A DNA stretch of 64,000 nucleotides, taken from assembly GCF_006345805.1 (NCBI RefSeq), contig NC_042998.1, positions 133,796,001 to 133,860,000 on the forward strand. Direction: 5' to 3'. Below the pieces are notes generated by a model that was not told where the DNA came from, did no database searches, and saw only the letters and a program-made list of their open reading frames with translations. Both the position numbers and the translations under genes were made by a program. Each line of letters begins with the position of its first letter. Positions within the stretch are counted from its first letter, which is position 1. This DNA is from Octopus sinensis (lineage: Eukaryota). This document shows, one piece after another, positions 1,466 to 39,263 of this stretch.

Positions 1466-2015
1466 AAGTGAGAAAGCAACTCGCGCCGTCAAAGTGACAC
1501 TGAACTACAAATTTTGGAAGCCCAGTATACATACCATGACTACCTGTCTGATAAGGGTACACCAGGTACATGCATCACAACCATATGTGCGCGACATAGT
1601 GATCTCATATCAAGATAAACAATGCATGACCCTGCATTTGGAGTCCAGTTAGAATTTTCTTCACGTTGAGTAGCCCATCCGGCTCAAAATGTACCTGAAT
1701 AGGGTTGTTTACGAATGATGAACGAAGCATCTGTGTTTCAAGAGGTGAATTGTGCAAACCCCAAAGAATTCCTCTAAACACAAGGATCTGATGCTCCCCC
1801 ACTAGTCCTGCTCGAAATCAGCGATGCACATGTCATCGGTCACTAAGTGACACACTCAACTGGCTAGGGTCAAGCAACTGACAAGCAAATCTGTGGTATT
1901 GAGCAGAATATTTGCTGTAGCCCATCTTTTATACCAAGACAAATCAATGTACGTGATAACACTTCCAATCAGTTAAGATCAGAAGCCATGAAAGCCACTG
2001 CTTGGTACTGCATCA
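1466..2015 (-). mobile_element. Family A ~550 bp non-coding retroposon, older full-length copy
   Basis: Collinear with copies at 23147-23695 and 38706-39263 (shared gtgacact...gatctcatatcaagataaac...gtactgcatca). Confidence 0.85.
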
Positions 2016-2534
2016 AACCATAAGCCACACCTAGTGAGCTGACAGAATTGTTAAGCGCCGATATTAATATTTTTGTTTTTGCTACATACAAAATAGTTTT
2101 TCAAACTCAATATTGCTGTACTAATGGTGTCTTCTACTTTTAGCAATCCTCTGCCTCCTTCCTTTCTTGATAGGTTGAGCTTGTCTGTTTTACTTTTAAG
2201 ATGATGTTCCATGTACATTGTGAGTTAGAGACATGTTTTTGTGGTTACAGTTGTTGGTAAGTTAGGACTGCCCTCATGATCCAACTTTTACTAAGCATTC
2301 AAGTTATGACAGCCATGCTATAAAGTATATCAGGGGCTACATTTCCCAATATATCTTCTTATATTAGAAGTTTGTAAAGAGGGGTTTTAAAAGAGTTTTA
2401 ACAGCAATTTCTTACAGTATAAGTGACCGGGGCAATTGCATATTATGAGTGAAATGACACTTTCAGACAGCAAAAGAATCTGAGAAGAGGGACAAATCTA
2501 ATAGATACATTATCAGCTGATGGTTCATTCAACT

Positions 2535-2925
2535 GACAAACACACTATCATATAATTTATATCATGAAACTAGTAGATATATTATTACCAAACGGTATCT
2601 ATTAAACCGTTCAACACATCACTTAATGGAAAATATTGTGAACACACTTTCTCCTAATGATATCAGTATAACTGAGAAACACGTCATTTTCTAAGAATGT
2701 CGGTAAATTGACAAACATAGTCACCTATTGATCTCTAAATCTGACATGCACTCTGTCATCTAAGGGTTGCAAGAAAACTGGTAGACACTCTATCACCTGA
2801 TGATATCTATAAAACTGATAGGCATCTAATATAAAACTAGTATATACACCTAATATATATTAATAAAACTGGTGGACATACTATAATTGGTATATGTGAA
2901 ACTCGTACATCATTATCAAATAGGT
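2535..2925 (+). repeat. Degenerate ~35-45 bp minisatellite (approx. acactatcacctaatgatatatataaaactggtag)
   Basis: Recurring cactatcacc...taaaact(g/a)gtag motif; two further units at ~4103-4185. Confidence 0.55.
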
Positions 2926-3454
2926 ATGTGTCATTTTGTGGACCGAATTAAAGTTTAAATTTAATTTCTTTGGCTGGATTGGAATAAATATTCTTAAAGA
3001 GGTCAAATTAAATGGCTAAATTTAATAGAGAAAACAAGGATTATGAGATGTTAGTATAGTTTGTGCACAAGGATGCGTGGGAAAATTCTTCTACATGGTA
3101 TATATATATATATATATATATATATGTATATGTATATATATATATATATATATATATATATATATATATATATATATATATATATATATATATATATGTA
3201 TATGTATATATATATATAGCTCTATAAAGAAAATAACGAAATAAATAGAACTTCAAATAGAAACATGGGAATGACCACGACGCTATGACTATCTTAGGAG
3301 TCTTTAGAACGAGATCTAAGATAGAAATTGTTCAAATGAAAGCAAACAATTAGCTTCAATGCTTGAAAGAATACTTATACTGTGTCTACAGCAAAATTCT
3401 TTCTGCATTGCTCATATCAGTAGAATCCATTACAACAAACATGTAATACATCTC

Positions 3455-3851
3455 GTTTCTACTCTAGGCACAAGGCCCTAAATTTTTGGGGGAAGGGGCC
3501 AGTCAATTAGATCCACCCCAGTACGCAACCGGTATTTAATTTATCAACTCGAAGAGGATGAAAGGCAAAGTCGACCTCGGTGGAATTTGAACTCAGAACA
3601 TAAAGACAGACGAAATACCTATTTCTTTACTGCCCACAAGGGGCTAAACACAGAGAGGACAAACAAGGACAGACAAACGGATTAAATCGATTACATTGAC
3701 CCCAATGCGTAACTGATACTTAATTTATCGACCCCGAAAGGATGAAAGGCAAAGTCGACCTCGGCGGAATTTGAACTCAGAACGTAACGGCAGACGAAAT
3801 ACGGCTACGCATTTCGCCCGGCGTGCTAACGTTTCTGCCAGCTCGCCGCCT
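3455..3851 (-). mobile_element. tRNA-derived SINE family B, dimeric long form
   Basis: On the minus strand: head ggcggcgagctggcagaa (A-box-like), gagttcaaattcc (B-box), core gtcgactttgcctttcatcctttcggggtcgataaattaagtacc present twice; flanked by imperfect TSD acatgtaa..at.tct. Confidence 0.9.
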
Positions 3852-37526: not shown

Positions 37527-37830
37527 ACTGGTACTTAATTTATCGACCCCGAGAGGATGAAAGGCAAAGTTGACCTCAGCGAAATTTGAACTCAGAACGT
37601 AAGAACAGACGAAATGCCGACAGGCGTTGTCCCTGCGTGCTGACGATTCTGTCAGGTCGCTGCCTTTAAATAATAATAATAATAATAATAATAATAATAA
37701 TAATAATAATAATAATAATCCTTTCTACTAAAAGCACAAGACCTGAAATTTTGTGGGGAGGGGACAACTCGATTAAGTGGTACTTAATTTATCGACTCCG
37801 AAAGGATGAAAGGCAAAGTCAATCTTGGCG
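37527..37830 (-). mobile_element. Two SINE B copies separated by (AAT)n; the second is cut by a (GAA)n tract
   Basis: Family core at ~37535-37600 and ~37780-37830. Confidence 0.85.
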
Positions 37831-38012
37831 GAAGAAGAAGAAGAAGAAGAAGAAGAAGAAGAAGAAGAAGAAGAAGAAGAAGAAGAAGAAGAAGAAGAAG
37901 AAGAAGAAGAAGAGAAGAAGAAGAAGAAGAAGAAGAAGAAGAAGAAGGAAGAAGAAGAAGAAGAAGAAGAAGAAGAAGAAGAAGAAGAAGAAGAAGAAGA
38001 AGAAGAAGAAGA
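37831..38012. repeat. (GAA)n microsatellite
   Basis: Read directly; explains the poly-K/R/E ORFs. Confidence 0.95.
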
Positions 38013-38620
38013 ATCATTTCTTTATTAGCCACATGGGCCAATAAAAGGTCCAAAAGGCTTAAGTACAAAAAGACAGAAAAGAAAGAGAAAGGAGTTTAAA
38101 GTGTGTACACAGATTTCAACAGAACAATGACGTAACAATATTTTAATAATGAAGAGTCTATTATTGTATAGTATACCCATAGAATGGTACCGATAATCTC
38201 TATGTGCTTGATGCCCGACATTTAATGTGGTGATGTCGTCCTCGTATGCCGACACAAACCGTACACATGTTAGTTCCCGCGGGACGTCCTAGTCTGTGGT
38301 CGTGCAGAATATTTGTTTTATTTTCTATATGATATACTACGGCTGTCACAAGCAAGGAAATATTTGTTTCTCGTGATACCTCAGCCATCTATATTTTTAA
38401 CTACTCTCAGACCGAAGTATATTGGAATCAGGTGCAGTTCATCACTCTTTAGTGTTGTTGAATTTTCCTTGGCGCATAGATTTTTATGCTCCAGATTGGT
38501 TTGCGGCATTTCTCGATTTGGGCCTGCGTCGCTCTCTCAGGCTACCGTGTTTTTGAGTCCAGTACATTTGTACATTATTGGTTTCCTCTGGGTTCCGTCT
38601 TAAATTTGCTTCAGTGTGGT
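38013..38620 (-). mobile_element. Decayed L1/Tx1-like LINE fragment with (TTC)n tail
   Basis: Minus-strand SAYEDDIT (cf. SAYADD RT motif); gctAATAAAgaaatga immediately before (TTC)n. Confidence 0.5.
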
Positions 38621-38705
38621 TAACTCTATTATTTTACCATACATCCCAGGAGATGAGTTTTGGTATTTTTTATTATCATTATCATCATCATTATTATTAT
38701 TATTA

Positions 38706-39263
38706 TTGAGTGAGCGAGCAGAGCATGCCATCTAAGTGACACTGGGGTAAAATATACGAAGCCCAGTATACCCATCATGACTACCCGTCTGATAAGGGTA
38801 CACCAGGCACATGCATCACAACCATATGTGCGCGACATGGTGATCTCATATCAAGATAAACAGCACATGACCTTGCAGGTGGAGCCCAGTTAGAATTTTC
38901 TTCAGATCGAGTAACCCATCCTGCTCAAAAGGTCCCTGAATAAGGGTTGTTTAAGGACGTTGAACGAAACACCCATGTTTCCAGAGGTGAATTATTCAAA
39001 CCCCAAAGAATCCTTCTCAACACATGGCTATGATGCTCCCCCACTACTTCTGCTCGTGATCAGAGATGCACATATCGTCAGCCACTAAGGGACATGCTCA
39101 ACTGGTTAAGGTCAAACAACTGACAAGCAATCTGTGGTATTGAGCAGAATATTTGCTGTAGCCCATCTTTTATACCAAGACAAAACAATGTACATGATAA
39201 CACTTCCAATCAGTTAAGATCAGAAGCCATGAGAGCCACTGCCTGGTACTGCATCAGGGCATT
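38706..39263 (-). mobile_element. Family A retroposon, full length
   Basis: Both termini present, (TTA)n on both sides; used as reference copy. Confidence 0.92.

Follow-up and report, generated by a model that had tools for sequence, protein, structure and literature searches.

A non-coding, partly LINE-derived retroposon of Octopus sinensis that probably targets (AAT)n microsatellites

A stretch of 64,000 nucleotides (nt) of Octopus sinensis DNA (contig NC_042998.1, positions 133,796,001 to 133,860,000, assembly GCF_006345805.1), referred to below as the window, contains six dispersed copies of a repeat that is called here Family A. This family is probably a non-coding, non-autonomous retroposon lacking long terminal repeats (non-LTR), derived in part from a long interspersed nuclear element (LINE), which targets (AAT)n microsatellites and is moved by a LINE of the Dong/R4 type. 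Retroposons of this kind, dependent on a LINE and partly derived from one, are already known in general; to our knowledge, no well-described non-autonomous dependants of microsatellite-specific R4/Dong LINEs are known.

Copies of Family A and their microsatellite flanks

The copies were collected by a BLAST search of segment 38651-39320 against the window, followed by multiple alignment and by alignment to a 556-bp majority consensus, whose coordinates are given as A1-556; the copies are numbered c1 to c6. All six were found at the positions given in a preliminary description made from the sequence alone, with identities to the consensus of 82-97%. Their structures and those of their flanks are as follows:

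c1, 2021..1467, minus strand: A1-555, full length at the 5′ end, 88.6% identity to the consensus; degenerate (AAC/AAT) tail at 1442-1466; 5′ flank not (AAT)n
c2, 12394..12832, plus strand: A111-556, 5′-truncated, 93.1% identity; (AAT)n tail at 12833-12858; 5′ flank a 113-bp (AAT)n tract at 12282-12393
c3, 17009..17231, plus strand: A335-556, 5′-truncated, 89.7% identity; short AAT-type tail at 17232-17257; 5′ flank an inverted (ATT)n tract at 16933-17006
c4, 22664..22138, minus strand: A1-528, 81.8% identity, the oldest copy; last 28 nt lost, then (AAC/GAC)n at 22088-22137
c5, 23694..23149, minus strand: A1-556, full length, 91.9% identity; (AAT)n tail at 23063-23148; 5′ flank (AAT)n at 23695-23901
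c6, 39262..38708, minus strand: A1-556, full length, 97.1% identity, the youngest copy; tail at 38670-38707; 5′ flank (AAT)n at 39263-39331
Compound (AAT/GAT/GAC/AAC)n microsatellite, 22665..23148, minus strand: connects c5 to c4

The first nucleotide is identical in four of the six copies (c1, c4, c5 and c6), and c2 and c3 are truncated at their 5′ ends, to A111 and A335, respectively. The common 5′ end that had been described for the long copies was thus confirmed, but in four copies and not in three, c1 being the fourth. At the other side, five copies end in ..CTCTCTCACTC(AAT)n; the series of 5′ truncations with a fixed 3′ end that had been proposed is represented by c2 and c3, and its exception is c4, from which the last 28 nt and CTCTCTCACTC have been lost. 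When both ends were searched as motifs, the 5′ motif ATGCCCTGATGCAGTACC was found four times in the window with up to three mismatches, against 0.04 occurrences expected by chance, and the 3′ motif five times, against 0.3 expected. The outer flanks are unrelated among the copies, which therefore represent dispersed insertions and not a segmental duplication.

The family is non-coding, as had also been proposed. The longest open reading frame (ORF) in the consensus is of 59 amino acids (aa), no match was obtained by blastx of the consensus against 120 LINE proteins, and none of its ten small ORFs was found by exact look-up in a protein collection. Similarly, blastx and a hidden Markov model (HMM) of LINE homologues detected no coding similarity anywhere in Family A outside nt 79-126, a segment that is described below. 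The GC content of the family is 45.5%, compared to about 35% for the window, and its observed/expected CpG ratio is 0.28. With unrelated flanks, a constant 3′ end, variable 5′ truncation and no coding capacity, Family A shows the characters of a non-LTR retroposon inserted through target-primed reverse transcription (TPRT). As the insertions are located in microsatellites, any target-site duplications would be masked.

A head transcribed by RNA polymerase III, whose absence had been noted before, was not detected by the programs either: ARAGORN found no tRNA in Family A, and Rfam gave no match over the whole window at gathering score and none at E ≤ 10 over c6 and its flanks. As regards A and B boxes, only AGTGG and GGTTCG, about 270 nt apart, were seen by eye, and no head of the tRNA, 5S, 7SL or small nuclear RNA (snRNA) type was recognised. 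A long hairpin at about A455-503 showed one compensatory change among six close copies, with z-scores of -1 to -1.9, and no covariation was found in the 5′ region of the family.

The association of Family A with microsatellites was analysed by counting (AAT)n tracts of at least four units, which make up 1.7% of the window for both strands together, or about 0.8% per strand. Compared with this figure, (AAT)n in the same orientation abuts the 5′ end of four of the six copies (c2, c4, c5 and c6), and an AAT-type tail follows every copy, although that of c1 is degenerate and that of c4 is (AAC/GAC)n. By simple binomial reasoning, the enrichment at the 5′ flanks has a P of about 1e-7 when each copy is treated as independent, and of about 1e-5 with three independent sites. 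Therefore, the enrichment of same-orientation (AAT)n at the 5′ flanks, which the preliminary description had put forward as a check, is real, though not absolute: the flanks are less uniform than had been described, since c1 has no such tract and that of c3 is inverted.

The individual sites differ in structure. The 113-bp tract upstream of c2 is preceded by (GAG)n, and therefore it is not the tail of another element. Copies c5 and c4 lie head to tail inside one compound microsatellite of about 1.8 kb. The 5′ flank of c1 consists of 34 nt of unique sequence, followed by a fragment encoding the thumb of the reverse transcriptase (RT) of another LINE. The inverted flank of c3 is more precisely (ATT)n(ATC)n, so that this copy lies between microsatellites of opposite orientation. 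The window as a whole is very rich in simple repeats, with 184 rows in the output of Tandem Repeats Finder.

Links between Family A and a putative Dong/R4-like LINE

Two copies of Family A are neighbours of members of a LINE family, named here LINE1 after its longer representative:

LINE1, 12859..16304, plus strand: 5′-truncated, putative Dong/R4-like LINE with a restriction-like endonuclease (RLE); RT, CCHC and endonuclease motifs, with frameshifts; starts directly after the c2 tail
LINE1-family 3′ fragment, 39698..39332, minus strand: 84% identity to 15920-16305; directly upstream of c6, with only (AAT)n between

LINE1 is 3.45 kb long and terminates on its 3′ side with ..ACTACTG, after which comes (AAT)n at 16305-16365. 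Its ORFs contain RT motifs, a CCHC motif and a C-terminal restriction-like endonuclease of the PD..D..K type (CRICGDGQETINHIISSC; RPDIVV..IDVSIP), and no AP endonuclease. On the basis of this domain architecture and of its insertion target, LINE1 would be a Dong/R4-like element, and its named hits in fish, lizard, shrimp and cnidarian are simply compatible with the R4 clade. The best protein relatives, from fish, lizards, shrimps, cnidarians and ENA assemblies, share 41-52% aa identity with it in the N-terminal half, and the Pfam domain RVT_1 was precomputed on the LINE1 homologues. The closest nucleotide relatives found, L009 (75%) and the Logan contig L010 (91.5%), reach only the middle and the 3′ end of the element; L010 confirms the 3′ end of the LINE1 family at 91.5% nucleotide identity, and that end is unlike Family A.

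The relatives of LINE1 in ENA assemblies form head-to-tail arrays in which same-orientation (AAT)n alone separates the units. The full-length ones measure 4.0-4.1 kb and start as (AAT)n-AA-[A/G/C]-T-GTCCTGGGTATGAC.. or directly as (AAT)n-GTCCTGG... Together, these arrays and these starts immediately after the microsatellite indicate that the LINE group is (AAT)n-specific, as described for Dong, the target of which is (TAA)n (PMC3774820). An (AAT)n end is common to LINE1, its 3′ fragment, L010 and the relatives in L002-L005, and the last 90-140 nt before the tail cannot be aligned between subfamilies of the relatives. In Octopus vulgaris, Dong-R4 elements are among the most recently active LINEs, with 1129 insertions of about 4.2 kb each that amount to 4.73 Mb (PMC13282606).

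The first ~200 nt of the 5′ untranslated region (UTR) of these relatives (GTCCTGGGTATGACA.AAAACT.CA.CCGGTTGTGGAGTTTCG..) show very strong conservation among copies and across two ENA assemblies (sites L002:7263; L003:4652 and 8759; L004:4716 and 8732). RNAalifold produced for this region a long nested fold with little covariation, in which a fold like that of the hepatitis delta virus (HDV) ribozyme was not recognised, and Rfam returned only microRNA-like hairpin noise at the loci of the relatives.

After masking of the six copies of Family A, the consensus gave a single significant hit in the window, that of A79-126 to positions 12861-12909 of LINE1 (plus strand), which are the first 49 bp of the truncated element (84% identity, E 2.6e-7). 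In LINE1, the matching segment lies in the reading frame (..FCLGIRDELQQRYILNTKK..), and from QQRYIL(NT) onward it aligns with a conserved ..KLANVRRxI..KKLTDxEI.. motif of more than 20 homologues, whereas in Family A the frame is broken. Therefore, Family A carries a decayed piece of the N-terminal coding region of a LINE, which by comparison with the relatives would be located about 700 nt inside the full-length element. This segment has an internal position and occurs in every one of the four full-length copies of Family A and, given the conserved motif that it encodes in LINE1, it is common to both families by descent and not specific to one locus.

A second link is found at the 5′ junction. 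Family A starts as (AAT)n-AA-A-T-G[C/T]CCTGATGCAG, and the junction form (TAA)n-N-TG[C/T]CCTG is also that of the full-length relatives of LINE1. Compared to TGTCCTGG in fixed register, c5 matches at seven of eight positions and c6 at six of eight (TGCCCTGA), with a P of about 0.004 according to our own post hoc estimate.

The third link is one of position and orientation. Twice in 64 kb, an element of the LINE1 family and a copy of Family A stand head to tail in one shared (AAT)n tract, in one case c2 followed by LINE1, and in the other the LINE1-family fragment followed by c6, the tract at 39263-39331 being also the tail of the fragment. With respect to (AAT)n, all of Family A has one fixed orientation, which the local RLE LINE shares, in agreement with the preliminary description. 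The latter had also stated that no 3′ homology to the local LINEs exists, which holds; the family is nevertheless related to them through A79-126, which is homologous to the LINE1 ORF, and its 5′ junction bears the signature of the LINE1 relatives.

The HDV-like ribozyme that had been suggested for the 5′ end of the family was found neither with Rfam nor with a descriptor of our own. A loose version of this descriptor matched 173 of 200 shuffled sequences and was hence useless; a strict version gave no match in Family A or at the 5′ ends of the relatives, compared to 3 of 200 shuffles, but it was never validated on a true positive, and consequently this was a weak test.

Two further features of the 5′ part of Family A were considered. 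Derivation of A1-78 from the Myb-like domain of the LINE was rejected, as an HMM of 15 homologues scored the frames of Family A no better than shuffles, and a 'YQAV' match seen by eye, on which this idea had drawn, was at chance level. A perfect TATA-box-like sequence, TATAAAAG, is located at A88-95 (e.g. 39168-39175, minus strand), inside the LINE-derived segment; of the four full-length copies, three have kept it, and the first position of c2 lies about 16 nt downstream. The motif may be there by chance, and no weight was given to it.

Proposed mobilisation of Family A and alternative explanations

We infer that Family A is mobilised in trans by a LINE protein, and likewise which LINE family would be its partner. 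According to the proposed mechanism, a transcript of Family A with (AAU)n at its end would be used in trans by the protein of a Dong/R4-type LINE, with its RLE and RT. The RLE would nick an (AAT)n/(TTA)n microsatellite in one orientation, and the nick would prime reverse transcription of the Family A RNA by TPRT, a step at which base pairing between the (AAU)n tail and the nicked target may occur. Where copying is abortive, 5′-truncated copies such as c2 and c3 would result. Each insertion would leave (AAT)n on both sides and thereby a fresh target, so that head-to-tail arrays would be formed. The LINE sequence at the 5′ end of c1 may come from template jumping at the close of reverse transcription, a phenomenon documented in vivo for R2-type RTs (PMC3414825), or from insertion into an older LINE.

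Regarding its origin, the element would be a chimera in which nt 79-126 come from the N-terminal coding region of a LINE and the first nucleotides are the 5′-junction signature of the LINE group, the other 430 nt, including the 3′ end, being from another source, which may be a 3′ UTR belonging to a different Dong/R4 family. The partner may thus be a Dong-R4 family from outside the window, with a 3′ UTR matching A127-556, or recognition may be mainly based on the tail.

Several results weigh against this interpretation. Neither a ribozyme nor a promoter was found at the 5′ end of Family A, as far as Rfam and the unvalidated HDV-like descriptor can tell, and a profile of the 5′ UTR of the relatives, run against the window and the copies, revealed no homology beyond the terminal 7-8 nt. 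Positions A127-556 show no similarity to LINE1, to the LINE1 fragment, to a second RLE LINE or to anything else in the window, and R2-type RTs need their own 3′ UTR (PMC3414825). Copies c1 and c3 have no same-orientation (AAT)n at their 5′ flanks. Finally, the six copies all come from one window; 60 kb of DNA from O. sinensis and O. bimaculoides yielded no further copies, nor did two metagenome scans and one viral scan.

Some of these same results would be expected if Family A were moved by another LINE clade and inserted approximately at random, its link to (AAT)n being due to its own tail, to expansion of this tail or to annealing to AT-rich nicks. The 5′ flanks of c1 and c3 and the lack of 3′ homology to the local RLE LINEs are in agreement with this possibility, as are the extreme abundance of simple repeats in the window and the frequent occurrence of microsatellite tails in LINEs, those of the RTE type among them (PMC2887409, PMC9115989). 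Random insertion is nevertheless unlikely in view of the same-orientation (AAT)n at four of the six 5′ flanks, including a 113-bp tract that is no element's tail, and of a 5′ junction with the form found in the (AAT)n-specific relatives of LINE1; the presence of a 49-bp piece of an RLE LINE within Family A also argues against it. This same piece, together with the adjacency to LINE1, could in turn be a by-product of template jumps by the RT or of recombination, Family A being of independent origin, for instance a captured host transcript. Jumps between templates are made in vivo by R2-type RTs (PMC3414825), the similarity lies exactly at the 5′ end of the truncated LINE1, where it adjoins a Family A tail, and foreign LINE sequence is present at the 5′ end of c1. 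However, the segment is internal and shared by all four full-length copies, and in LINE1 it is in frame, with its 3′ half encoding a motif conserved in distant homologues, which makes an origin of this sort quite improbable.

The preliminary description had named as its own refutation the case in which the family represents no more than a 3′ UTR belonging to a longer LINE; on that reading, the 'full-length' copies would have been cut at a preferred point, and c1 plus the RT fragment next to it would represent a longer copy. A same-orientation coding fragment of an RT thumb does lie 50 bp upstream of c1, but the sequence upstream of c1 is found in no other copy, and the ~280 aa that should separate the RT thumb from the 3′ UTR, with the entire endonuclease domain among them, are absent there. 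In addition, four copies start at exactly one nucleotide, three of them directly abutting (AAT)n, and no coding similarity exists in Family A outside nt 79-126. Hence, we regard the 3′ UTR explanation as very improbable. The interpretation of Family A as a retroposon moved by a Dong/R4-type LINE is the most likely one.

Genome-wide confirmation of this would make Family A a documented case of a non-autonomous element that depends on a microsatellite-specific R4/Dong LINE. That Family A lacks the 3′ UTR of its partner is relevant to how RLE reverse transcriptases select their templates, a matter of importance for R2-like enzymes in targeted gene insertion. The family also helps to annotate the large 'unclassified SINE' (short interspersed nuclear element) fraction of octopus genomes, which in O. 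vulgaris comprises 893 of 900 recently active SINE families (PMC13282606), and to explain why the (AAT)n tracts in the genome are mostly retroelement junctions. A more far-reaching possibility, which we consider rather doubtful, is that the Dong/R4-type LINEs of octopus mobilise unrelated RNAs through the (AAU)n tail alone, meaning relaxed recognition in a group that is thought to be stringent. In that case, a guild formed by the LINE, the major octopus SINE and chimeras like Family A, in which neither a Pol III head nor a ribozyme has been detected, would share one target, and the resulting arrays of microsatellites and retroelements would help to explain the richness of cephalopod genomes in simple repeats.

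Other elements of the window and comparison with known systems

Apart from Family A and the LINE1 family, the following elements were identified in the window:

Family B SINE, copies at 3438-3852, 8868-9114, 21167-21612, 25468-25890, 34181-34415, 37500-37668, 50457-50685 and 57605-58310
Penelope-like element, 29731-31437, minus strand: RT motifs (YGLPKVHK..) and a GIY-YIG-like C-terminus; 92.5% DNA identity to a copy on O. sinensis CM016873.1
Fragment of a second RLE-LINE family, 60384-60800, with 61032-61071, plus strand: 26-36% aa identity to LINE1 and its homologues
RT-thumb fragment of a third LINE (..RKEGGRGLLKVED..), 2050-2350, minus strand: separated by 34 nt of unique sequence from the 5′ end of c1

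Family B starts with CCTTTCTACTATAGGCACAAG and ends in ..GCCGCCTTAA(CAA)n(AAT)n, the next copy beginning right after the tract; it matches O. sinensis DNA at 85-97%, and ARAGORN found no tRNA in it. The RT fragment of the Penelope-like element at 31024-31437 (minus strand) is 88% identical to an O. sinensis protein and 80-82% to O. bimaculoides proteins. On its 3′ side, the second RLE-LINE fragment runs into (ATT)n, a microsatellite orientation opposite to that of LINE1, and smaller shreds of RLE LINEs are present at 55886-56135 and 59501-59713. Local tandem duplications were also observed at 9356-10038 and 43665-44297, each bordered by tracts of (TA)n or (AC)n/(AG)n; the unit of one is 324 bp, repeated 2.1 times at 97% identity, and that of the other is of about 255 bp.

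Among known systems, the short internally deleted elements (SIDEs) of R2 consist of the 5′ ribozyme of the LINE joined to the LINE's own 3′ UTR (PMC3414825). Like them, Family A is short and non-coding, contains LINE-derived sequence, uses the same target in the same orientation as an RLE LINE, has 5′ junctions that vary as those of the LINE do, and probably depends on the TPRT machinery of the LINE. In contrast to R2 SIDEs, the 3′ 430 nt of Family A match none of the LINEs compared, its LINE-derived piece is an internal ORF fragment, and no ribozyme was detected with Rfam and the unvalidated descriptor. If the family is examined end by end as a SIDE, the terminal TG[C/T]CCTG and the junction form match those of the full-length relatives without further homology, the local LINE1 being 5′-truncated; the 3′ end does not correspond to the 3′ UTR of the LINEs in the window or of L010, and the target and its orientation are those of the autonomous element.

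LINE1 and its relatives resemble Dong of Bombyx mori and the R4 LINEs in having a single RT, C-terminal CCHC and PD..D..K motifs and a (TAA)n/(AAT)n target in one orientation. Family A agrees with these elements in target, in orientation and in the form that its junction takes immediately after ..TAA, but it encodes nothing. Furthermore, Dong and R4 carry an HDV-like ribozyme at their exact 5′ end (PMC3774820), unlike Family A, in which none was found with a descriptor that is unvalidated.

With classical SINEs, Family A shares its short length, its non-autonomous nature, the high proportion of full-length copies and a simple-repeat tail; it differs from them in lacking a tRNA, 5S, 7SL or snRNA head and a tail in common with the LINEs of the window. 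Also comparable, within this same window, is family B, an abundant octopus SINE which has no sequence relationship to Family A, is shorter (about 200-250 bp) and occurs in far greater numbers, but which like Family A ends in (AAT)n and forms head-to-tail arrays with only (AAT)n between the copies. Thus, family B is probably a fellow client of the same (AAT)n-targeting LINE machinery.

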